Shown piece by piece: positions 44,829 to 62,023 of a stretch of DNA of 64,000 bases. The position numbers and the translations under genes were made by a program. This stretch comes from Ascidiella aspersa (lineage: Eukaryota). Positions within the stretch are counted from its first letter, which is position 1. Each line of letters starts with the position of its first letter. The stretch lies in assembly GCA_963924565.1 (NCBI GenBank), contig OZ004613.1:23622001-23686000 (forward strand), written 5' to 3'. A model generated the notes under the pieces. It did not search any database, was not told the DNA's origin, and was given only the letters and a program-made list of their open reading frames with translations.

Positions 44829-47800
44829 TTAAATCCATATGTCAGAAGTGCAATCCCCTCCAGGGTAGCGGATTTCGTGGGCCAGAACCGGGCCCCTTGG
44901 TTCCAGGCCAAAGTCGACGAAAGCGTTTTCGTTTAGTGTAAGTCCCCCGTTCACGGTGTCGACGTCGATTCTCAGGAGATAGGAGCCGGCCCTTTACATT
45001 CAAATGTTCTGGTTATGTGGTTGGTTATTGCGTCACAATGCACTGTTCTGAGATTACGCGTGTTTTGAAGTTGCTTTAAATGACCGTTGTTTATAATGTT
45101 AAACATTTCGGAGAATATTTTTTATTACAATATACAAAGGTTAGCAAATTGTTTTCTGATTATTTCTGTGGCTGTGGGCCCTGTAGGGTATACGAACATT
45201 AAATACGCCCCAAACAAAATCGAAGTTTAGTAATTTAATAAAAATACATACTAATACTTGGATTGGATACTCTGAATTCGTTATTCTAGTTTCGAGACCT
45301 ACAGTTCTTGAATCCCTGGGATTTTACTTTGAATATCCCTATTCGCGACATATATATGTAGCATATGTAAAGACAATCAAATAATTTAAGATAAACTTCA
45401 TTAATTTAATATATGCAAAACAATATGTAAACCAAAGAGAAAAATATTTTAAAGTCTTCATTGCATTTGGTTTTTAAAGCAATATTGCGTACTGTGTAAA
45501 GCCTGATTGATATGCTATTTCGGTACTACAAAATTCCCATACTCAAAAGAATAATGTTTAAAAAACAAAACAGAGCATGAACAAAAATCGATTAAAAAAA
45601 TTACAGTAAGCAATGCAAAAGGAAAACATCGTTTATTAGGCCTATTAACGCGAAAATTATAAACGTGTATAGGCCTACTTCCAAATATGCGCTACAACCG
45701 CTTACTTAATCATTCCGGGGTAGAACTGCTTGTCCCAGCCGCTGTAGAGTGAAGTGGTTACGTAGAGGCGCTTGCCGTCTAAACTGAGCTGCAGCATTTG
45801 TGGCGCTCCTTCAATTCGCTTTCCTCCGATGTAGCGCGGAGGCGGCTGGCTCTTCAACTCACTGTCTTCCGTCACCTGACCAACACGTAGCCAACTTATA
45901 GTTCGACGACTTTCATGTTTACCATGATGTTAGGAATAAGGATGACAGGCATAGGCGTAGCCAGGGGGGGAGGCCTGATGGGTCATGCCCCCCAAAAAAA
46001 AAAATTTATAAATATTTTACTCTTAATACTTTGTTTTTTTTAGCATTTGTGAGCAGTACCACAACAGTCCATCACAGCCATGCCACACCTTCAATCGTCA
46101 TACACTGTTACGTCACAAACGATGTAGTTAACATTACATTTGCTATACATTAATGTAGTTTTACTACTTAAAAGTCAGTTTTTGCTGTTTGAATGGTTTT
46201 CTTGGAAATGGAGTATTGCGTTAACACTCAGTCAGTTGCTGCTCGAAACGGTTTGCTAACTTTGTTATTGTGATCGTTACGGCGGTAAATACAATGACAA
46301 AAGCTAAACAAAAAGTTCAAACTTTTTGGCCCCCCCAAAAATTTTCGGCTGGCTACGCCACTGATGACAGGCTACTCGACATTTATCTCAATACCGATAC
46401 CCGATATTTTTGGTAAAATGTAGCGCGATTGGATCCAATACAAAATGACGCCATTATTAGGCTCAAACAAGCGAAATATATGGAATTGAAACGTTCACAG
46501 GCAATTTTGGTTTATATATTATTCCAAAATTAGATTTTAGCGTTAAGTTTAGTTACATCCAGTTGTCACACTACATTTTTTTTATAAATTTACATTTCAA
46601 GGTGGAAATCGCTTTGCCGGACTGAAAATCATGTCAGAAATGCTTGTATTAATTTGGTAGCGAATCGGCACTTACAGTATGTCACGCTAGTAGGGCGATA
46701 GCATAAACTTTACCAGGTAAAATCGCTATGTTTAGTAAACGTTCATTGCAGAACTTGCAAACACACGAGATCCGAAAATACCACTTGCGTAAAATGTCCC
46801 ATAAATATCGGTTCGAACGATATACGAAGCCAAGTGCTAATACAGGTTCTAGTTCGTTTGTAAATTAAATGCATATTTATTAAACACAGCGATTTATACC
46901 TGGTAAAGTTAAACAAAATAGTTAAGTGTTTAGGCTAACTATACTGTCTAGTGCTGAAGCAAACTTGGCTCGTGACAAAAATACCATTTGAAGTTTTTTA
47001 AATATATCTATTTGCGGAATCAGCCATATAATAATAACGCTATTTGGTGTAGGGTCTTAGGACGAACTTTTTATCTAAAATATCGGAATAAAATGTCAAA
47101 TGTGCGACAGCCTTGTTACGCAGTAGGTTTAACGGTTTCTCAAACGGGTTAAATTGATAGAGACGTTTTATTTTTACCAAACACTTAGTGATTAAATGTT
47201 ACATTTAGATTAGACCTCTTATGTTCGACATTTTTAACGATCAAAAGAGCTGACAACACTAACTTTGAACGAACAGAAATGTGAAAGTGCAATAAAAACC
47301 ATGAGAAAACAGTGGTGTTTTGCGGGATGTTATACTTTACTGGAGATATGCCTCTAGAAATATTAAAAACTTACTTCTGAAATCACAGAGTATTTTTTAT
47401 AATATTTAATGTTTTGTATCGTGTCCTCATGGGTGTAACTCCCGCAAAGGAAAGTTACAAGCCGATGAAGGTTTACTTTTTATCGTTTTACTTCCTACTT
47501 TCACATTTCCATCCGAGCAGATGCTTCCTCCTAGAAAGACCTGGCCAACCAACTTCGGGTGACGCGTGTCGGTGATGTCATACTGACGTATGTCGCCGTG
47601 CAGCCAATTGGAGAAGTAGCAATAGCGGTCGTCCATCGACAGCAGAATATCGGTAATCAAACCTAGTCGTATTTTGTGCTGTTTAAACTTTCCATTAACT
47701 ATAGGTAGAATATTTCTAAAAATGTGCTGCTTTTTGCTTTGAGTTATTGGGGACTGGATTTTTTGTCTATTTCTTTAAAGATAAGTTAGGAATGGTTATA

Positions 47801-50800
47801 TGGAGTAATAGGAAAAGTTGTATATTGCTTGCTAAATTTTATTTGAGAAACTTTTAGTCAACCGAACAAGTATAGCGGTAAGGGACTGTGTTTCGTTCCG
47901 CTTTATACGTTAATGCCGATTTCTCGTCATTTTCTTTTCCACTAAATCCGTGTTAGGAAAATCCTGATATCCATAAAGTTATCCAAAAGGCTTAAATTCA
48001 CGCTGATTACGTTAAACTATTTGGCGATAAACTTATCGCAAATTGTTTAGAAAACACAATTAGCAATGCTCTGGACAGTTTCTAGCAACCACACGCTTTT
48101 ATAGTTTTTTTCTTTCATATAGGAAACCTGTATGCAAAAGTTTAAAGTCAAAACTTTCTAAATTTCGTTTTGTTTGATGTTTATGTGTTCTCAAAATATC
48201 GGTCGGACTCGCTGGACTCACAATTGGGTCGCCGCATTATTTGGTTGGGTCGAGTGCTTGTTACATTTATTGAGATTGGTTATGAGCTAGATTTCTTTTT
48301 TTACAAAACAGTGGGAGAGCTATATTCCTCCAAAATTTTGAAAAACAGCTGGAGAAATAGGACGAAATGTCTCATTACTATTCAATTCGAATCTATTTAT
48401 GTGATTTTTCCTATGTTTTGTACATCTGAAATGTTTAGTAACCAGAACTGGCTCGCCAAAGCTATAGCTGCGACATTTTCGCTCAGCATTTGGGTCGATG
48501 CCAGAAAACGTTTGGAAAACACGTTTCTATTGGTCTCATTTTTAAACAGGTCAATTGACAGCACAACATAATAGGTTTCGCAGCGCTCTTGCGCAAGACA
48601 AAGCTATCAAACGTTAAGCAAACACTTGAACTAGTTGTTTAAACGTGTTGGCGTACATTAGACGCCAGTCGATCTGTAAACATTTTAGCAGCCTAATTTC
48701 CCAACGCGCGACCATCATTCGTTTTAAGATCCAAGTTGCGATCAAAGGCTCAATATCTTCCGAAAAGTCCAGCGCGGAAATCCGACTAGGAAGTTTTACG
48801 TCATTAAGTACCCATCCAGTAGTTTTGGCCAGCCGAAGTGCGGAAAGCAAAAAGGTATTGCTGTTTGCGCTCAAGGTAGAGCTTTGACTTTGCAGCAACT
48901 GGCACACTAAAAAAGGTGTTACGCATTACCGTTAAAACCTCTGTTTATTGATTGATGTTTGGGGACTGTACACAATCATTCTAGTATTTTATTGGGCAAA
49001 TATGCACATATTTGAAGCGTACGAATGTTCACCAAACTTTTGTATGTCCTGTGACGCGCTGACAAAAAAATACATTTACCAATGACGACGTGTGGTTCCA
49101 AAATTGTATAGCAGCTTTGTTCAGTTTAAATAAATAAATCGTACTGTTTTTGCTCATACGAAGCATTCCAATAAACATGAAACACACAATTGGCTTTAAC
49201 GCAAAGCCCCATATAATACCCAATCAAGGCGAGACTTAATTGCACTCGTAAAATTCAACTTAGCTCGTTTAAATATGGACTGTAGAGGTCATAGTGACAA
49301 GTGGAAGAAATAAAAACTTGGCGACCTCCAAGTTTTGCGAAGGTCGCATTTTATGTGAGCAATAAAAGAGTGCAACTGTGAAAACACTCCCGGTTGTTGA
49401 AGGAGGAAATGCGGTTTGTCGGCGGCGCAGTCCCTATGTTTACCTTCGCCTATTTTAGTCTGGGCGCCTGATAGAGAAGCGCTTGCGTCTGCAATTTCCT
49501 TTTGTTGACTTTTGCACCGTGGTAGGTGATTGGCGAATTGCTGGTCATACTAGTAAGCTTGTTGTGCTATATGACAGTGGTTTTCAAACTTTTTTGAATT
49601 GCAACCCAAATATAAGTATTGTGAACACCTCTCGACCCAACAGACTCAAACTAGCATGAAATATATTAGCATTGGTTGAATTTAGTCAATCTTTAGCAAA
49701 CAGTTTAAATGGTTTGATGGCGCTTTACTCCACTGGCATATTTGTTTAATTATTTAGCTCCAGTTTTGTTCCGTAACCAACTGGTCTTGTATATAACTTT
49801 GTTTGTATTTAACAAAGTTATATATAGTTTCTTATTTTTTACTTTACTCTGTGAAATCACAAGATTAAGGTCAATAAACGCTTGTTTAAAGAGTTAAACC
49901 TTCACTCTGTAAAATTCCATTCGGCGTTCACACCACACCTTTATCACAATGACGCGAACACAGCATGATAACGTGGCGTGGATCCAAACAGCGCGTAATC
50001 GCTTAAAAATAATACATTTTATAAATTACAAGCGAAATAAAGTCCAGTCGGCGGCTTGTACTTGGAATTTAATTTCAAATATTCGGTTTTCTTTTCTCGG
50101 ATTAATTAATTTACGAGTTATTCACAGTGCTTCTAAATCCCATGATTGATAACACGTATTTGGAGGTCGGTGTTATGCTCCCACGGGCAGCTTCTAACAA
50201 CTACTTGGTTGCCGGTTAGTGTTTCATAGGATTGACCGCAAAATATAAACAAAAGCAGAATTAGAGGTATGTGGTCAGCTTTAAGGATTAGCAGTAAATC
50301 CCAATAACGTCGTTCGCGAGACCTTTGAACAAAAATACCTTGAAATATTTACCGCAGTGGTTGTCAACCTTTAAACTAATTCGTTTCGTTCAATTAACGA
50401 AGATGTATTAAAGCCATAAAAACGTTGATTTTAAATTAAAGATCGTTTAATGTGGCAAATAAGTAACTGCAGACGGCATAATATTACGCTGGTGGAAAAA
50501 ATTCCCAAACTCTTCACATGGCATGAAAGATTCTCGCGTACCGGTTGAAAGTCTTCGCGTAACTCACGGTGAAAATTATTGTTTAACTCTCTATGGGTTC
50601 ACCATCGCAACCAGGTACCATTTGCCAAGGGCAGACTTCCTTGGATCGTAGCTTAACGGCGTGGTTTAAACAACATAAAACTTCAAACCGGTCCGGTAAT
50701 ATTACAAAAAAATGCTTTCAACTGTTAATTACCTACCTGGCATTACTGGCAGGGCCCAGCCTTCAACCTTCTTCGGCGGAATGCTGATAACCTTCTCGGC

Positions 50801-53800
50801 ATCCCAGGTTCCGTTCTACACAAAAACGAAAACACCACAATTATAGGCCTGTTCGCTTGCTGCTATGGCAGAGATTTTAACTTGTTAACGCGGGTGTGCG
50901 CGGACCATGCAAGGTCGACATGAATCGTGCAGTACTAACGTCAAAATATGAATATGATAGGAAACCTGCTGTTTTCAACCAAAAATGTGTAACTGAATTG
51001 CAGTATAAACACAATAGTACAACGTGTTTTTTCCGTTTTCTTTTTAAAAAAATTATAATTTTTCAATTAGTCGACTGATATTTTAATTGTGCTTTAATGG
51101 ACAACCTAAAGCGCTTCTACGTACCCCAAGGGGTCAAGACCCCAGTATAAGAACCCATGTGATGACAGAGCAAGGTGAACTTCTCAATAAAGGAATGACA
51201 CAGATTCACGTGTAACAAGTTCTCAAATACCCAGGTACTTTAATAGGAGTACGACTTAAGTAGTCACTTGGAAAGGAAAAACGTTTGTTTCTGTTTGTCA
51301 AAACTTAAAAAAATCGCACCTCGGTCTTGAAGAATCTGAACACGGTGCTGCTGAGAGCACAACCCACGAATCCCTCGGTGGCGGATGGATCGTGCAGGAA
51401 TCGTATCTCGAGTGGAATCATTCCGTCTGGTCCCAGGTCGATGTCCTAGTTTTAGGGGGAAACATAATAACGGCAAAGAGTATTAGGCCCCAAAATAAAA
51501 TTGGTATAAACCACTGTAAACTATAAGTTTACATTTTAGAAAATACGGTATGGATATGATTAGCGATGTCCGAAATATAGGATTTTAATCGATACGCGAT
51601 GCCAAGTGGTAATATCGGTACTCGTCCGGTACTACGGTGGTAGCGCTGCCGATACAACACTATATTACTATAGGTATTATAGCCATGATTGGCTACCCAA
51701 CACAGCGATTTCTACATTTAAAGGTAAATTTGTCAAAAAATAGTCGGTTAACAACTGACGGTATTGAACCTTCTTCATGCTAAAGCGAATTTTGTCCTAA
51801 TGATATGAAAAAAATTATCTTTGGACGGTTTAATTCATTCTATTCAATTTGTTTGTACATAGTAATTATGTTTTAGTAGCAGATCGGATTGCGATACATT
51901 TTGTGTTATATATTGGGTATCAATATCGGATTAAAAATTTCAAACATCGGACATCCCTAGAGCTATGATGTTTGAAATCTGGTCGAGACAGTTAGTTAAC
52001 GGCTTTCAGCTTATAACAATAACCAAAAAGGTCATTTAGAATGGTTGGTTTGTTGAATGGTTTATCGAGACAAGGTGATAGCCTTAACAATTCTTTCATG
52101 GCTAGTCGAGTCGTCATGATGTTATTAAGAAATCCGACTATTACCTGAATTATTTCTCTTGTAGTCCAGTCCCATACGTGGAGTGAATGTCCGTAGTGAC
52201 CTGCGATTGCAAAATACTAATTTATTTATACCGCCTAATGTTAGTTCAATGAAACATCATTATCAAAAGAAACCTGCCGTCAGACCATAGGCGTAGCCAG
52301 GGGGGACTGAGGAGCCATGCCCCCCCAAAAAAAATTATGAATATCTTACTCTTAATATTTTTTTTGTTTAGCATTGATGAGCAGTGCCACAACAGTAGAT
52401 CACAGGCATGCCACACCTTCAATTGTCATGCATTGCAACATCATAAACGATGTAGTTATTATTACGTTTGCTATATATTAATGTAGTTTTGTTACTTTTA
52501 GACAGGTTTTGCTCTTTGAATGTTTTTCAATATTGCCTTAACACTCAGTCAGTTGCTGCTCTAAACGGTTTGGTAACATTGTTATTTGTGTTCGTTACGG
52601 CAGTTGATACAATGACAAAAGCTGAACAAAAAAGTTCAAACTTTTTGGCCCCTCAAAATTTTCGGCTGGCTACGCCACTGCAACGGACCTGCTGTTGTAC
52701 AGCGAGATATGACCGCCAATTCAACAAATTAAAAGTAAACGCAACTGAAATGGTATACATGGTTTGCCGATATTCTACCTGGTGACTGACATGAATGCTG
52801 TTGTTGTTCCAGATTTGTGGCACAATATATGGGGCGAATTTAATTTCACATTGCAAAGCTTTTATAGACGTTGTCATTACGATATTTTCAATGAAGCACA
52901 CTGAAGACCAAAAAGTAAATAGAGATGTTTCATTAACGATTTTAAATCGTGACTTTGTAAAATGTCGTTTCAATAGAAGTACTAATGATGACGAGATGTT
53001 ACAAATTTAAAACCATCAAAAAGCTATAACAAAGTCCATCACCTGCCGCAACGTCGTCGGGGTTGAAACCCGACAGCAGTTTCTTGGGGGTTCCCCACTC
53101 CGTGCTGATCATGACGTTGTGGCGGGGCTGGTACCAGAAATCGTAGCCGAACTTGGGGTTGTGGCCGGGTTTTTCCCAAACACCCTCCAGTTCAAAGCTT
53201 TCCGAGTCGAGGATAATAAATCCTCCTAAAAATGGGTCGTAGTGCTTGGGTTGCTTAATGCGGTAGTGGTTATAACCATGAAACTACCGGAAAAGTAACT
53301 TTATAAAAATCCTCTTATAGCTGGAAGCCCAAATTGAACGATTCTCTACTGAGATGGCTTTATGGTTAGTTTTTCTTAGTAAGAACACTTACCAAGAGGC
53401 ATAGTATTACACAGGGTTACTATAGTTATAGTCTGAAAACATACTCTGGGACATCGTTGGTATTAACTTCGTACATTTTAGTCCCTAAAATTCGTTTAGC
53501 ACAGCAAACTTGATCACTATTGTAAGCTTGCCATATATGTCATAAGGGTGCGTACATTTTAATTTAGGGCTACTGTAGAGTAGAGTACCATGGAATGTTC
53601 ACGACGCTTTTGTGTTGAAAAGACTGTATCCCGAAGAGGGCTTAACATACTAACAATGCGTTTTAGTTGAAACGATCAATTTACTTATTATTATTGCCGT
53701 TACCTTACGATGGTATGTTTATAAAAGATGCAGCGAATTTTTTGAATTTTAGATACACAAAGTTGCAAAGCTTTCATATTTGATATTTCCAGTTTATGCA

Positions 53801-56800
53801 CGACGCCTCTAGGCACAAAAGATGATTTACCAGATCGAGATTTATAGGTCAAGGATATAATGTAGCCTCGCGCAAAGCGCAAAACATTGCAGCATTTGCA
53901 TATTTAAAATGGCAAAAAAAGTATTGAGAAGGCCTTGTTCTCAGTTTATCAGTTAGGTAAAGGACCGTTGACGACCCATGGTTCAGGTTGCCTATAACAC
54001 TTGTTAAAATTAAGGTTAATATAGCCTCCATAGGAAACAGAACATATCCATAAATTTGGTTTTGCACAATAGGTTCCATCGTTTTATATACACGATCTAT
54101 ACCTTTCCCGTTTCCTGCCGGGTCTCCAATCGTGCTTATCATAATCTTCCCGCCCGGAATGCAGTGAACGGTGTGTGGGTTAGCCAGCCCCGTCTTGTGC
54201 ATCACATCCACTGGTTCCACCGTCTAAAAACGTTTTGTGTTATGTATAATAAAATATATGATAGGTTTGTGACAAACATATATTGCTGTGCAGAAGGGTC
54301 GAGGCAACATCTCCTTCTCCACGTTTACGTTATACCAATGCTGTTAGTTACCAGCCTATACGTATCAATAACCAAACGTAACAATGGTTTTGGAATTGGC
54401 TTTGTGTTCTTGAATGTGTGCCGTTTATTTGCTAAATAAGTTTGAGAAGCAAGCTGTGTTGTACCTTGATAAGTAACTAATTGTTGATATACGTGTTAAG
54501 CGAAACGTAAGACAAATAAACCTACTCTGAAAAAATGAATGTAATTGAATAGACCTGTATAGCAAAAATACTTGGTAAGTTTAATTTATTTTGTGAGTAC
54601 GTTGATGTTCTTTGTTTAGCTGTTGACTTTCATGTTTAGATAACGTGCTTCTTTCATCGTGCCACATGAAAGTACTTCGTCGTTGCTGTACTACGTGCTT
54701 TGCTGCGTGTGTACTGTGTGTGTACTGTGTGTGTGGATTTGGAGTTATTAGACCAAGATTTGGAGACTGCCGTCATTGTACGTTAGGGCAAGATGCGCAT
54801 TTCAACGCGACAACCCTTTGTGAGACTTGACAACCCTTTGTGAGCCTCCAGGTCGGCCATTGTCTATACAGACCGCTTTTAGTTCAAACGGATAACTAAA
54901 CACATGTTCCGTCTAATCTAATCATTTAGTTTTTCAACTTTCAAGTCAGTTACCTATTTGAACAGTGACAAAAGCCAGCGGTTCAGCGCAAACGGGGAAA
55001 AGAGATCTTATACCTTGGCAATCCTGGGCCGCTTCGGGTCTGTTGTTACATCGACGCCGTAGATGCGATTGGAAACCAAGCCCGGCATAACGAACAGGCT
55101 CCGTCGCTTGGTCGGGTCGTGGAAGCAACTACTGCAGGCGTTCCAGCCAGTGTGGTGAAGCTCGTCCTTCATGTTGGGCATTTCGAGTCGGTCTATCACC
55201 TGGATTGGACAATGGCAGAAATTCAATCACATTAACCTGTCAATGTTAGAACCTATCACCTGAAGTGGGCAACGGCAGAGGGTGTTCGCTCTTAAGGTTA
55301 AGCGACTGGACTCGTTTTGTTAAAATCTTTAAATGTTTAGCACTTCTGAGCGTCGAAGTAAAGTTTATACCCAGAAATGTAAACCACGCACAGTTATGCA
55401 GGCCGCAGAATGTAATAGGGAACACACAAAAAACGTAAAAAGCAATAATACCTGAAGTAGAAAATTTTTTAAAACCATAGGCCAACGACACAATACAGCC
55501 AAATGCGCAGTAATATCCATGCAGTACAGAATAAGATCAAATTCGTCTGAATAAGACCTAATATCGTAATACGCCCTAAATTCATTGGAACAAGACCTAC
55601 ATGGTCAAAATAACGCCTTAAACCAAGGGTCGGCAACCTTTTTCTAGTCGCGGGCCAAAACGAAACTCAGCATATTAAAATGTTAGAACAGCTTTTATTC
55701 AGGCGGGCCTCGTATCTTTTTTTGCACTTAAAAACGTGTTTAATTACATATAAGAAGGCAGTGAATTGTTGGCGCAAAGCGGAAAAAAAGCGTTTGTTTG
55801 GTTTAAAATTCTAGTTCACACGTCGACATCCATACTACATATAAAAAGTGTAATAAAAGTACATTGAGAAAACGGGATAATCGTTTTTAATTAGTCTAGT
55901 TCCGTGTTTATTAAACTTTGTGTCCGGGAGCACCTGACGAGCGCAGCGAGCACGATTTTTTTTTTGTTTAAAAGACAGCCTTAAAACGTAAACGAACCGG
56001 ACGTACAAAGATCAATCGCGCAAAACGCGAAAAATTTTCCCACTTTGCTACGTAGTTAAAATAGTCATAAAGTATTTGAAATGAACTCGTGTCTAGTTTG
56101 TCAACGAGTCGGCGGGCCCGCGGGCCGTAGGTTGCCGATCCCTGCCTTAAACTGTAGATGGTGGACGATCAGGGGCCATCTGTTTGGCATTGGTCGTTTT
56201 GGTGACTACGTTTGGGCGCCCTAGTTTGACCGGCCCCGTAAGGGTGCCGCTGTTTTGACAACAGATTTTTGATGCTAATATATATATATCGTTAAAAATA
56301 CTTTTATGATCAGGCTCGTTGCTCCTAAAGGCCTATAATACAACAAAGTTAAAAGTCCATTTAATCCATTTAAAGTGTGATTATGGCGTTTGTCTGGAAG
56401 GGAGAAAATAGATTAGCATTGGACAATAATGGTTGGAGGTTGTAGTAAGACGTAATACGAATATCAAAGCCCATTCAGAAGTAGGTATCAATTTGAACGT
56501 TTCGAATAACTCTTTATTCATTTTTCAACAAGCTTAGCATTGAGTTTACGCTGCGGCAGTTGAAGGATTGGTCAAATAGCATAGAGACCATAGAAGTTCA
56601 TAACAAAGTTTTCACACCTGGCAGAACGTTGGCGATGTTTCGTCGAGATCTACCGTTGCCAAATAATCAGGAGCGTTGATGTCAGTGTTCCTGCAACAAA
56701 TTAGCCAATCTAAGAACTAACAATCTATGAATAAAGGCTTGTTCGAAGTGTTCGGCCATTTACCAGTTTAATTAAATATTCTTACGACTATTCTATGGTA

Positions 56801-57568
56801 ATTAAGAGTGTTGTAATAACTTAAGTCACTGTTTTGAAATTACTTAACTTGAATTAAGTATTTTAGCCAAAATTATTTGACTGGACATAAGTATTTTGGA
56901 CAAACGACTTGAATGGACTTCATTTTTTCAAAAAAATAATTTGTTTATTATCAACAACAAAAACTTGCCTATGTTTTGCGTCGTTGCAAAATATGGAAAG
57001 TTTCAATGTTAAACAGGGATTCTCGTAACCTGTAAATGCACGGAATGTAGACTATCTTCTCTTTGGGCGCCTTCATTGCGTCAATAGGTGAAGCATAGCC
57101 AGGTCCCGTAGATGCCTTGCAGCAAGACGGCTCAAGATGCTTCGCTATCGTTTCGACTCTTTGCGCTAAAACCAGGAGATAAAGAGCAAGTCAATATTTA
57201 AGCTTGACAGTAACAAAGAGAGTTTAATATCAAGTAACTTGTGGTATATTTAGACCAATGTGCACAAACTGTTTTATCGATGCGAACTTTTGAAATTTTA
57301 CCAAGCCGCGCCCTTAACGGCGTTTGCTGGTATATGCTTCTTGGTCTCCTTAATTTCGTTCCATAGTATTGAAAAAAACTAACTGAATTTTAGACCGACT
57401 GAAAAGGTAAAGATTCAGTTTGAGTTTAACTTTAACTAAGTTTTTAACTTTAACGCAGCTTCGTTTTAGCTGGATGTAAAGATTTAACTATTTTTCAGCC
57501 CACTAGCAAATGCGGAGCATTGAGAAACCACATGGAAAGGACTAAGTTTAACTCGCCCACTTACACAT
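44829..57568 (-). CDS. SELENBP1: Selenium-binding protein 1 / methanethiol oxidase, 486 aa, 12 coding exons, N-terminal PTS2
   Basis: Exons 57568-57565, 57165-57030, 56690-56618, 55199-55014, 54223-54103, 53225-53043, 52200-52145, 51445-51320, 50815-50737, 47662-47499, 45875-45706, 44991-44829; 1461 nt, all GT-AG and phase-consistent. Hallmark motifs [100 protein letters not shown]. Confidence 0.96.
45950..46363. mobile_element. hAT-type MITE, copy 1
   Basis: TIRs CATAGGCGTAGCCAG / CTGGCTACGCCACTG; perfect 8-bp TSD ATGACAGG. Confidence 0.88.
52286..52680. mobile_element. hAT-type MITE, copy 2 of the 45950-46363 family
   Basis: Same termini and highly similar body; TSD degenerate. Confidence 0.85.
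55624..56144. mobile_element. hAT-type MITE
   Basis: TIRs CAAGGGTCGGCAACC / GGTTGCCGATCCCTG; perfect 8-bp TSD CCTTAAAC. Confidence 0.88.
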
Positions 57569-57986
57569 ATTTGCAATATTCCGTTGCAATGTAAAACAGG
57601 GAGAAGGTTGGGCGAACTCCAAGAAAGGCAGAAGAAATACTCAGCTCCTAAACAGCTACACAATGACGCAGCAAAATTTAAAGCTGTTGATCGTGAAATA
57701 AAACATGCGTGTAAATTTGAGAGATCAATACAGGTTCTATATCCAGGTCACAAAACTTTTTTTTATGAAGAGCCCGATAAATGTAAGTGCAAGTCCTGCG
57801 GGCCTGGGCATTGAGCCTTAGTAATTGTCGTACAGATTCCATTCAAAAATTAGCTTTAAAATGCATCCGCCAACATTTCAACTGTACTACTTCTGGAATT
57901 AACCCCGCGGGATTTAGTTTAGTGACCGTTACTCTATATTAAAAGATAATCAAAAGCAGCAGCAAAGCATTTTTGATAGCAACAAG

Positions 57987-58364
57987 TGTTACGCCAAACT
58001 AATCCAGAACTCTACTTAACGGCCTACCGACTGCCAAGCGCTACAACGTGTGTCTTTTACTTGTATTAAAATAAGCGACAGTAAAATGCTAAAACACTGA
58101 AACAACGAAAAGCGGCCAACGCCTAAAAAGGTGACTTAAACGTTAATTCCCAGGGTTTTTTACAATGAAATAAACTCAAGCTAGACCCTAAACGCGACTG
58201 CCCACAGTAGATTTCGTGTACCCATTCACTACAACGAGAGAAAAAAAGGTGTGCGTGTCAAACGTAACTAATTATTGAGAAAGAAAGAGGAAAACGAAAA
58301 CACGCGTACAAACGATAAAACACAGAAACACCACACATAGAAACTATAAATATTCGGTGCAACA
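57987..58364. mobile_element. Solo LTR (Gypsy-like, 4-bp TSD) upstream of SELENBP1
   Basis: TGTTACG...TGCAACA termini flanked by CAAG on both sides; homolog at 18649-19073. Confidence 0.72.
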
Positions 58365-58974
58365 CAAGAACGCAATGCAAAGTTTGCAATAAAAAAGAGC
58401 TTCATAAAACCAGAGCACGATATGTAAGTAAAATGTCAACTGCTTTTGTGCTTTTGCAAAGCAATCTAATTTTTCCCAAATTGCAGGTTGAACGCGGCAT
58501 CCATTTTGTGAAATTTATAACCTTTATAATCATATCAGGATTTTGACGCCATCAATAATTTGGCGCGCACATTCAGCAACGAGCCAACTAATGATAGCTC
58601 TAGATTAGTAGCTAGTAGCACAATTCGCCAAAAAATTCGAATAAGATGCGAATAAACTCGTAAAAAAATATATTTAAAAACGTCAACATTATTAACCCTA
58701 GCCTACTAGTTGTGGGCGCACAACAAATTAATTGCAATGAAATGATTATAGTAAATTATGAACCAGTATTATTGGTGTATTATGCGCACTTCAGTTAACT
58801 GGGTTTCAGAATATTTTTGAGGTGGCCACAAAAACGGATTTACTAGCTTTATTAACAGGGCATGCAAAACAATATTCGTCAAGTAAAGACGACCAAACAA
58901 CTTAATAGAATGTCTAACAGTGATAGCACTAGGAAAAAGTCGGTGCCAGTCTAAAATCCTACCACAGTTATTAA

Positions 58975-59118
58975 ATCAACGCACAATATTTGGGTTAGGG
59001 TGCGAGTTAGTGTTTGGGTATGGGTGGGTCAAGTATTATTATATTCATTATTTAATAATAATACTTGAGCCAACCTTACCCAAACGCTAACCCGCACCCT
59101 AACCCAAATTATGTGCGT
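58975..59118. repeat. Inverted pair of the telomere-like (CCTAAC) motif found in the 3.5-4.1 kb foldback element
   Basis: GCACAATATTTGGGTTAGGGTGCG...GGGTCAAGTATT followed by AATACTTGAGCC...CCCTAACCCAAATTATGTGCG. Confidence 0.7.
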
Positions 59119-62023
59119 GGTGATAAGATTCCAGACCAGGGCCAAAAAGCCACTTCCGAATTGTGCAGCGGTAGGAAATCGTTCGACCTTGAACTAGGTC
59201 AAGAAACAACAACTGGAAACGTGGTGTGGTGCTCGCCGTCTTTGCGCGTGAAGCGTGAAAGTACGCGTGAAGTTTTTTTTTTTTCGCTAAACGAGTGAAG
59301 TTTGCCAAGTCACGCTGTTTAAAACGACTGAATTTCCCTAATTATAAGGTTAGGCGGGCGAATGCAGAACATATTTTTACTGCACGTCCATATTTGCAAT
59401 ATTATTATGCCTAATTAATAACTTGGATGGTCTTTCAATTTTTATCTTAATTTTTATGAAATGCTTAAACAAAATAATAAGTATAGTTCTACGTAATGGG
59501 TTATGATATTCACTCTTTTGATTTAGGTCAGGAGTTCTTAACCTTTTTTTTGCATGTTTTACACTTTTAACAAAGTTGAATATCAGATATTTCTCTGTTT
59601 TTGATAAACGAAAGTAACAAATTGCTTTGAAGTAGCAGTTATAATCTGAACTAGGAAGGTAAGATACCAATACCTACAGCTGGCTTAATTTTTCTGTCCC
59701 CAAAATAATTGCTTCCTGGGGTAAATTCACCCCAGGTTAAGAAGGGCTGCTTTAGATCATTTTACACTCTGCAATATGACTTGCTTTAGTTTTCGATAAT
59801 ATTTGGCAAACTGTCTTTAGAAGGCGCCATCATAGCTAATTACTGACATACATGCTCAACAATTTATGAACTCAACAATTATGAACCGTTCGGTGTAGGC
59901 GGCCGAGTTGACACACTTATCACTCTTAAGAAATTGACTCCGAACTACTGCACTGTAGCCTAAACGACAACTGCTCTGCCAAACACTTGCAAAATCGCAT
60001 CACAACTTTGGTGCCAACATGCGCTTGATCAACGTTGAATGGTTCGCGTCCGCACCCTGTACAGCTTTAGGTGGGTAGGTTCGTCGGAACGGCCTACGCT
60101 TGTCTTAACCAAACAAACCTTTGCTTGAACTGAACCATAATATACAGTCAACAAAACGAGAAAGAAAAAGGCAGACAGCATTGAACCGCACGGGATTACC
60201 AGCAATCTAGCATGTTCTAGACTCTAGAGAGTTTGAATAGCGGGAAAAAATGCGACTGGTACAATCACAAGACTCATACGATTTGGCACGTTTCTTTCTC
60301 CACCTTTTGTTTCACTACATTTTAAACCCTTTTAACATGACTATTAGAGATGATACTAAGGAATGCACTATTCATTAATAGTCATCTTTAATGTTTCGTT
60401 TTGTATACACAAGTGGTTCTGCACTTTATTTATATGGCCCACTTTCACAAGTGGTTCTGCACTTTATTTATATGGCCCACTTAGTTTGTATATTTCCTGC
60501 GTCTTGTGCCCCCCACAAGTATTAAATATTTATTTGATGTAGCCTATGTGGATTACATAACAGTGAGACAAATATCAAAGATCGCACATAGCGCGAAAAT
60601 TTGCGTTTATTTAGTTTCAGTTGACTAAACTCTCAAATATACATGACGAAACAGGTCACACATACAAACATACACATTGCTCGTGCTCGATATTGACGTT
60701 TGTCAATGTGATTTACTGATTTTTTAGACTTATCATTATCGAGGGCCATTTACTCCACAACTGTAAGGCTGCATAAAACTACGCAAGTCCACACGAAAGC
60801 GTTGTACATTGCGTTTTTTGTGCTTTCAAGGGTGTTACACACAAATAAGCCTAAACATCACAGATCTATGTCACATGTGTCATATCTACTAAATCATAGG
60901 TGGTAAGTAATGCAGACAGAGACCAGAAGCCACAATTATTACTTTGGTACCAACAAAAAGCCACACCTCTGCCTATTCATGGGTAGAAATGAACACCACT
61001 TCGTTTTGTCCTCACTCGCACACATAGCCTACCTTCATTCAATTAGATTTATTTAATAAACGATACTAGCACAAATTGATATTCATATAGTGACCAGTGC
61101 AATAAATCGCGTCAGGCTGTCGAACTTTCTGAAACAGGGGTGCGTAATGTTTATAAGATATCTACTTAAGTGTTTTTATTTATTTGGTAAGCGGGTTGGG
61201 ATGACTTGAAAACGCAACTAGCCACTTTACGAACGCCATGCTATTCCTTCACTGTATATAGTGTCTTGAAAGTTCATTGCAACTTAGTTTTTCGCGGGCC
61301 TTTTACTATATGCCACTCGAACGATCCGACATGGAAGCGGTAACCCCATGTTTAATTTGTTTCGGTAAAATGGTTTGTGGTTCAAAACCGCGAAACTGGA
61401 CCAAGTTTGCCAAAATCTTTACCCGTCAACAAAAATAAACAGTAAACTAAATCGACATTGTATATCCTAAAAATTAAAATACAGGATGAACGTAAATCGG
61501 CATAAAACCGGGTAAAGAGACGCATGCAGCCTGCGAGCCATTGTTTTGCCACCACTGTATTAAATCTAACGTTTTACCACTTAAAAACGCTAGCAACTTG
61601 TGCTGATTGCATCACAGGATTACACACCAGCTGCGGTGCACAGCTTTTTAAATTCTACAAGAGAGTGTACTTTGAGACGAAACGCGCATTTTGCACAAGT
61701 TAGCTTCGTTTTTGAGCTTATTGGGGATAGACTCCTCACTATAGGGATAAACATGTTGCGATTTGACAATACGGAGCATATGAAGCAGGAAGTCAAAACA
61801 ACGTTTCAGGACTCTACAACTGAAAAAACATTTCACCCCTATATTGGAATCCAAAATCACATTGTATCTTATCTGTTTCAAGAAATGCAGCAATCTGATT
61901 TTACACGAATTGCCAACGCAAAGATATCGCGCTATTTTATTTAACTTACTTTTTCGAAGAGACATTGTTTTTGCTATAAAGATTATACTAAAAATAATAT
62001 ATTTTGGTATATATTTGATAAAC

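Follow-up and report, generated by a model that had tools for sequence, protein, structure and literature searches.

A probable peroxisomal targeting signal 2 on the methanethiol oxidase SELENBP1 of the ascidian Ascidiella aspersa and its relatives

A candidate PTS2 at the N-terminus of an ascidian SELENBP1

We analysed a stretch of 64,000 nucleotides from the ascidian Ascidiella aspersa (GenBank assembly GCA_963924565.1, contig OZ004613.1, positions 23,622,001 to 23,686,000 of the forward strand; hereafter the window), which is free of N. By homology, it carries on its minus strand a complete SELENBP1 gene (SBP56 family, methanethiol oxidase) with 12 coding exons, at approximately 44829-57680 and about 12.8 kb long. 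The nonapeptide RVETIAKHL close to the start of the predicted protein is probably a functional peroxisomal targeting signal 2 (PTS2) that would route SELENBP1 to peroxisomes, and we place the probability of this reading at about 0.65.

RVETIAKHL fits exactly the PTS2 consensus -R-(LIVQ)-X-X-(LIVQH)-(LSGA)-X-(HQ)-(LA)- quoted in a passage of PMC4726662, so that the exact fit claimed in an earlier reading of the same DNA (hereafter the original prediction) holds. Given the residue composition of the stored homologues, the chance of a broader PTS2 pattern is 1.3e-5 per position, and among 90,929 positions in the bodies of those homologues this pattern was found twice. The observed motif is far beyond chance.

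From the alignments, the PTS2 is an insert of 11-12 residues that heads exon 2 and is missing in vertebrate orthologues and in a signal-less paralogue in the same genome; it can be placed at the head of this exon because the paralogue shares the preceding micro-exon but lacks the insert. The original prediction counted 14 extra residues, for which our comparison gives 13, GPGY lying at residue 22 as against residue 9 in 473-aa vertebrate rows such as P0227 and P0228. It had also read the Cys residues after the nonapeptide as resembling a PTS2 cleavage site. These form part of the family CC/CxxC-GPGY motif, which is found in homologues without the extension as well, and we rejected the Cys pair as evidence of processing, as it says nothing on cleavage.

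Conservation of the candidate signal in tunicates and amphioxus

We searched for the motif in relatives from several starting points. With exon 4 (72 aa) as the HMMER query, 689 matches were obtained, mostly fragments, and the motif preceded GPGY in none of the 150 listed. When exon 2 (47 aa) was used by itself in a word search, no candidate relative came up. P0001, a match of the exon 4 query, is a 252-aa sequence from a marine metatranscriptome catalogue that is 71% identical and has RLEKVSGHL; a word search from it added 64 proteins, and in none of these does the motif precede GPGY. Starting from the close relative P0161, we obtained 5,869 proteins, and the counts for relatives given here come from the best 120 of these (119 besides the query). 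A strict PTS2 directly before Cys-GPGY was identified in 7 of the 119:

P0224, Ciona intestinalis: N-terminus MSNRVEAISKHL, nonapeptide RVEAISKHL
P0220, Clavelina lepadiformis: N-terminus MSSRVEAISKHL, nonapeptide RVEAISKHL
P0223, Styela clava: N-terminus MAERVTTIKSHL, nonapeptide RVTTIKSHL
P0234, Branchiostoma: N-terminus MGDRLEVVKGHL, nonapeptide RLEVVKGHL
P0225: N-terminus MASRVETVSKHL, nonapeptide RVETVSKHL
P0218: N-terminus MASQRLEKVSGHL, nonapeptide RLEKVSGHL
P0219: N-terminus MALNRLEKLSSHL, nonapeptide RLEKLSSHL

Near fits were found in P0222 (RVTTIQSHL), P0221 (RIEAINKHI) and P0333 (RVDNIKGHV). A tally of 11 tunicate/amphioxus sequences, made up of the 7 strict rows, P0222, P0221, P0001 and the window sequence and leaving out P0333, has R1, [VLI]2, [IVL]5 and H8 in 11/11 and L9 in 10/11, with 3-5 different residues at each of motif positions 4, 6 and 7. 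Fixed positions 1, 2, 5, 8 and 9 with a variable remainder are the pattern expected of a helix face that binds PEX7.

The conservation of R, H and L that the original prediction proposed to check is thus present in tunicates and amphioxus, and absent from the listed vertebrate, echinoderm and hemichordate rows. No named vertebrate row among the best 120 has a PTS2 before GPGY, these sequences starting M-A-x-C-x-x-C-GPGY or similar, and the sponge, placozoan, jellyfish, echinoderm and hemichordate rows of the same set are also without one. In a tree of 60 rows, from which the N-terminal region was excluded, the 8 tunicate-type PTS2 or near-PTS2 rows fall into one clade along with the signal-less P0237 (Shimodaira-Hasegawa-like approximate likelihood ratio test, SH-aLRT, 100), and the Branchiostoma row groups with vertebrates. 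The orthologues are annotated merely as methanethiol oxidase.

PTS1-like tails in echinoderm and hemichordate orthologues

C-termini were examined in 114 full-length rows (at least 440 aa) for the pattern of a type-1 peroxisomal targeting signal (PTS1), [SAC][KRHN][LIM], as given in a part of PMC4690255. Nineteen of the 114 extend past the family ...DIWx end, and 8 of the 114 finish in the PTS1 pattern beyond DIWx, including all 6 rows of the echinoderm/hemichordate clade; by composition, the probability of such an ending is 0.0045 per C-terminus. The tails are as follows:

Acanthaster: ...STANL
Amphiura: ...NTANL
Antedon: ...TPSNL
Glandiceps: ...HTAKL
P0293 and P0307 (both in the echinoderm/hemichordate clade): ...STANL
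P0291: ...ATANL
P0309: ...TASRM

The stored rows with these tails are P0238, P0246, P0259, P0278, P0291, P0293, P0307 and P0309. Looser tails that fall outside the PTS1 pattern were seen in Lingula (-GKL), Patella (-NKL), P0327 (-HKL) and P0301 (-PKM).

PTS2 and PTS1-like tail never occur together: the 8 tailed rows are without a PTS2, and all the PTS2 rows end plainly in DIWx. On a tree with both trait regions removed, we count 3 changes for PTS2 (10 rows, strict and near) and 3 for PTS1 (8 rows). The strongest argument for peroxisomal routing is that two different peroxisomal signals appear on the same enzyme in sister lineages, suggesting that selection acts on the destination as well as on the motif.

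The ambulacrarian tails, in pointing to peroxisomes, also bear on whether the extension could be a mitochondrial or other N-terminal presequence. Like such a presequence, the segment lies at the N-terminus, has R and K residues and is probably helical; its acidic and basic residues are equal in number, which is atypical for a mitochondrial presequence, and a basic presequence is exemplified in this genome by its ACAT1-like thiolase (MASNFLRNFTKVSRAGCRFASNRPS). We give this explanation hardly any credence.

Gene structure and support for the first exon

The letters of the window at 57568-57024 (minus strand) agree at every coordinate with the original prediction, including ATG T/gtaagt at 57568-57559 on the minus strand and the exon at 57165. 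The features of the gene, all on the minus strand, are as follows:

57565..57680 (5' end approximate), minus strand: first exon, 5' untranslated region and 4 coding bases ATG T; from sequence, RNA depth and the sole ATG between about 57700 and 57565
57566-57568, minus strand: start codon ATG, with T at 57565; from sequence
57166..57564, minus strand: intron 1, 399 bases, donor GTAAGT at 57564-57559, acceptor AG at 57167-57166; from sequence and RNA depth 0 in 57264-57460
57024..57165, minus strand: exon 2, next donor GTTACG; from translation, SBP56 profile and 80% identity to Ciona P0224 residues 3-47
57134..57160, minus strand: PTS2-type nonapeptide RVETIAKHL, model residues 4-12; from consensus fit and tunicate/amphioxus conservation
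57095..57124, minus strand: family motif CC-x4-GPGY; from exon 2 translation, also in homologues without the extension
56615..56692, minus strand: exon 3 (approximate, tblastn bounds); P0224 residues 47-72, open reading frame
55011..55220, minus strand: exon 4 (approximate); Pfam SBP56 E 2.1e-25, tblastn
54101..54220, minus strand: exon 5 (approximate); Pfam SBP56 E 1.6e-10, tblastn
53041..53226, minus strand: exon 6 (approximate); tblastn
52139..52210, minus strand: exon 7 (approximate); tblastn
51320..51445, minus strand: exon 8 (approximate); tblastn, 95% identity to Ciona
50735..50848, minus strand: exon 9 (approximate); tblastn
47460..47672, minus strand: exon 10 (approximate); tblastn
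45705..45878, minus strand: exon 11 (approximate); tblastn
44829..44999, minus strand: last exon, then stop, no PTS1 tail; open reading frame, tblastn and C-terminus translation

The structure was assembled from separate exons and tblastn pieces rather than from a joined spliced product, and searches used single exons or stored orthologues. The identification as SELENBP1/methanethiol oxidase in the original prediction is upheld by matches of single exons to the SBP56 profile (PF05694; 89.9 bits, E 2.1e-25, and 40.9 bits, E 1.6e-10, against a cut-off of 34 bits) and by full-length collinearity with Ciona intestinalis P0224, of which 11 tblastn pieces, reaching down to 44832, cover residues 3-486 in order at 65-95% identity, with no internal stop. 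Exon 2 alone matches positions 2-29 of the profile at 27.7 bits (E 1.6e-6). The predicted product has the N-terminal Cys-GPGY motif and a C-terminal end of the GGDC[ST]SDIW type followed by a stop, and its methanethiol oxidase activity is predicted from orthology.

The reading frame of exon 2 contains a TGA at 57193-57191 and no ATG between this TGA and the motif, which calls for a coding exon upstream. The first exon's T completes the first codon of exon 2 as TCG (Ser). Scanning the 4.3 kb upstream of exon 2 for ATG followed by 3n+1 bases and GT[AG]AG gave two candidates. One is 57568; the other, 61025, falls beyond the stretch to which RNA was mapped (54900-60800), the last five bins of which (59825-60800) are without RNA. 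Position 57568 is accordingly the sole phase-compatible start exon in RNA-covered DNA, and it is the sole ATG between about 57700 and 57565.

One stranded paired RNA run carrying the same species label (X4) was mapped over 54900-60800, with mean depth per bin as follows:

57067-57263 (most of exon 2): RNA depth 9.2, first mate on the plus strand
57264-57460: RNA depth 0
57461-57657: RNA depth 5.4, first mate on the plus strand
57658-57854: RNA depth 0.67, first mate on the plus strand
57855-58051: RNA depth 0.21, first mate on the plus strand

First mates on the plus strand are the usual signature of minus-strand RNA in stranded paired data, and this pattern is common to the N-terminal bins and the downstream exons. 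Depth in a DNA run (X1) is about 60, that of single-copy DNA, across these bins, indicating that the RNA signal at 57067-58051 does not come from repeats. An expressed exon of about 100 bases ends within 57461-57657 and is followed by a silent gap up to exon 2, matching the gene model. The splice proposed in the original prediction is further supported because both SELENBP1 genes of this genome are predicted to have the same 4-base first coding exon, the paralogue carrying an identical ATG T/GTAAGT micro-exon about 1.06 kb upstream of its exon 2. The Ciona and Clavelina orthologues begin M-S-x-R. From the RNA depth, the sole candidate, the paralogue micro-exon and the orthologue starts, we infer the exact splice to be 57565/57165.

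The 57565/57165 junction is absent among the read joints listed (15 of 78), and the start codon rests on the gene model. This absence would fit a gene-model artefact, in which the nonapeptide is untranslated, trans-splicing at 57165 or another first exon supplies the 5' end, and translation starts at the Met of DAMKAPKEK, the next one in frame. Spliced-leader trans-splicing is common in tunicates, and P0001 begins with MKAPKEK. This Met lies downstream of the invariant Cys-GPGY start, and an internal start there would remove the family-invariant CC..GPGY. The RNA in 57461-57657 comes from a unique-copy exon, on the right strand and with a silent intron before exon 2; orthologues have M-x-x-R as their start, ahead of the motif, and several of them come from contigs of mRNA size (1.6-1.8 kb); and the paralogue has the same ATG T/GTAAGT exon. 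We therefore consider an artefact very improbable.

A signal-less paralogue

Searching the species' own genome (308.6 Mb) with exon 2, we identified one further copy on the same contig, at a distance of 0.8 Mb (G000:C7:22853000-22862999). It is a complete SELENBP1 gene with neither PTS2 insert nor PTS1 tail. Its exon 2 has no insert and opens, at the acceptor itself, with (x)AACCKTGPGYATIADAIKSPKETLAYIPCVYR, and its later coding exons are all present, aligning to Ciona residues 12-486 and ending in a stop. The candidate micro-exon at L007:7538 leads to the predicted start MS-ACCKTGPGY. Another first-exon candidate, near L002:1207 (ATGTAAGT), was rejected, having no usable in-frame donor; L007:7538 fits.

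The peroxisomal import pathway in this genome

The gene for AGPS keeps a canonical PTS2, suggesting that this species makes use of the PTS2 pathway. The AGPS gene was located through its FAD-oxidase_C domain (PF02913) at G000:C4:3440986-3454400 on the minus strand, and one of its exons matches guinea-pig AGPS (PDB 4bby) with E 1e-18. The protein begins MNTKGQQEKSRLDAISRHL, its first exon (about L014:4843-4770) reading MNTKGQQEKSRLDAISRHLSVKKP before a GT donor, and RLDAISRHL occupies residues 11-19. A regular set of peroxins is described for Ciona species in a part of PMC4690255, where nematodes are noted to have lost Pex7 and Oikopleura to have lost peroxisomes.

We additionally noted an intron-less frame of 297 aa at G000:C9:16644048-16644779 (minus strand), with a whole PhyH domain (E 2.6e-39), which starts MGEFMFSDNQKQKFEEDGF and has no PTS2; by its sequence it looks PHYHD1-like rather than PHYH-like. 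RVITILKQL, which turned up among the PhyH matches, was rejected as chance-like, lying in a 23-aa open reading frame without Met.

Weighing a possible peroxisomal SELENBP1

In the mechanism that we propose, PEX7 would bind the folded enzyme in the cytosol through the PTS2, and the PEX7-bound enzyme would be taken up into the peroxisomal matrix. Methanethiol would then be oxidised to H2S, formaldehyde and H2O2 beside catalase in the peroxisome, and the cytosolic form would come from the signal-less paralogue at 0.8 Mb. We infer the binding to PEX7, the import and any removal of the presequence. The possible peroxisomal routing of methanethiol oxidation raised in the original prediction gains support from the conservation of the PTS2 and from the PTS1-like tails of sister lineages, localisation being a prediction from these signals.

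Besides the unlisted junction, several observations weigh against this routing. The tails -ANL and -SNL are weak, non-canonical forms of PTS1; -ANL resembles the weak PTS1 of the catalase type. A whole-genome search with Thiolase_N (PF00108) found no ACAA1-type peroxisomal thiolase, a classic PTS2 cargo, its matches being ACAT1-, ACAA2-, ACAT2- and HADHB-like loci and a fatty-acid-synthase KS domain; this absence may reflect loss, or a miss by the exon-wise search. Rows that group with Patella and Owenia (P0265, P0277, P0286, P0315, P0321, P0323 and P0232) have an R-[LVI]-x-x-[LV]-x-x-x-[LV] extension with no H-L pair, the segments being RIAAVTRAL, RVAAVGRAL, RVDAVQRAL, RLEALAPAL, RLQVLHPVL, RLKALTPAL and RIDAVSRGV. 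Judged by their sequences, they could represent signals that have decayed or are non-canonical, or a helix serving another purpose. Finally, SBP56 was localised as cytoplasmic or nuclear in plants and in C. elegans, according to parts of PMC11394908 and PMC6812014, respectively. A non-peroxisomal SBP56 in the worm agrees with the loss of Pex7 in nematodes.

The H8-less extensions, and the cytoplasmic or nuclear position of all the SBP56 proteins localised in those parts of the two papers, would suit an alternative in which the N-terminal segment is a conserved amphipathic helix (for partner binding, membrane association or regulation of the Cys-Cys site), its fit to PTS2 is incidental and the protein is cytosolic. 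In tunicates and amphioxus, however, it is exactly the key positions of a PTS2 (R1, hydrophobic 2 and 5, H8 and L9) that are fixed, the others varying. Moreover, the sister lineages without the segment have a PTS1-like tail, and the mutual exclusion of the two signals is hard to explain without a shared destination. We regard such a helix as an unlikely explanation, and a functional PTS2 as the better account of the segment.

Comparison with known systems and earlier literature

Vertebrate SELENBP1 (PF05694) belongs to the same family and is collinear over nearly its full length, with the CC/CxxC-GPGY start, invariant His, Cys and Asp columns and the GGDC[ST]SDIWx end, at about 65-70% identity to the tunicate orthologue P0225. 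The vertebrate rows have neither extension nor C-terminal tail, whereas the window gene has 13 extra N-terminal residues that form the candidate PTS2. In classical PTS2 cargo (peroxisomal thiolase, AGPS and PHYH) the consensus nonapeptide lies within the first 20 residues, as it does in the model of the window gene; these proteins are imported by PEX7, whereas import of the window SELENBP1 is a prediction from sequence. Echinoderm and hemichordate SELENBP1 is an orthologous and presumably peroxisomal enzyme that differs in having a PTS1-like C-terminal extension and no N-terminal one.

Among SBP56 homologues of bacterial appearance, P0100 starts MRRREFLATTGAAGAAMLLPAC and P0133 starts MHRRDFLIATAAASAAP, N-termini (MRRREFLATTGAAG... 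and MHRRDFLIATAAAS..., respectively) that look twin-arginine-like and may be Tat signals. Their sequences suggest that the enzyme is exported in bacteria, an N-terminal signal thus removing it from the cytoplasm, as proposed here for the window gene; unlike a PTS2, this would be periplasmic export by a different signal and machinery. The only PDB entry for the SBP56 family is the archaeal 2ece.

A literature search on selenium-binding protein or SELENBP1 with PTS1, PTS2 or peroxisomal targeting, most subscription journals lying outside its coverage, returned nothing relevant, its one match with PTS2 being a transcriptome study of salt stress in a plant. SELENBP1 was on no PTS2 cargo list found in the literature searched, which did not extend to subscription reviews of PTS2 cargo. 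Only unrelated studies were among the matches listed for selenium-binding protein with peroxisomal matrix (gene expression in COPD), or with Ciona (plant thermogenesis and C. elegans reference genes). For methanethiol oxidase with peroxisome, the two highest-ranked matches mention PPAR-alpha in the abstract, and the matching parts of PMC11394908 and PMC6812014 held only mentions of peroxisome proliferators or PPAR.

Evolutionary implications

SELENBP1 has been studied as a cytosolic or nuclear protein, a tumour-suppressor marker and a source of H2S, and its loss leads to extra-oral halitosis. From the sequence, we predict that this known enzyme exists here in a new localisation variant, addressed by a signal of known type. 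The PTS1-like tails in all 6 echinoderm/hemichordate rows and the second complete SELENBP1 gene with neither signal are new here.

More broadly, we tentatively propose, at somewhat less than even odds, that a peroxisomal methanethiol oxidase is an ancient and widespread condition among the marine invertebrate deuterostomes, perhaps even among bilaterians, and that the signals for it are interchangeable, tunicates and amphioxus having a PTS2 and echinoderms and hemichordates a PTS1-like tail. The peroxisomal location would have been lost on the vertebrate stem, moving the production of H2S, H2O2 and formaldehyde to the cytosol, and ascidians would keep both locations by means of two paralogues.

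If the invertebrate orthologues are indeed peroxisomal, the enzyme would have started out in an oxidase compartment, where catalase is at hand to deal with H2O2. Vertebrates would then have shifted an enzyme that makes H2S, H2O2 and formaldehyde to the cytosol, which bears on its proposed signalling roles. SELENBP1 would also be a new animal PTS2 cargo, of which, to our knowledge, only a handful are known, and a clean natural case of exchange between PTS2 and PTS1 in sister phyla.

Additional observations on P0001 and on repeats

In the P0001 product, the end of exon 5 is followed directly by exon 2 of a second, almost identical copy, the two copies differing at one residue where they overlap. 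A tandem duplicate that is read through, a back-splice or an assembly join could account for this structure.

Very high-copy repeats lie inside and upstream of the window gene, at 56426-56524, 55491-56278 and 58840-59233, with a repeat contig word depth of 40,000-360,000 compared with about 60 for unique DNA. The repeat unit of about 100 bases at 56426-56524, which is about 90 bases from exon 3, shows opposite-strand joints.

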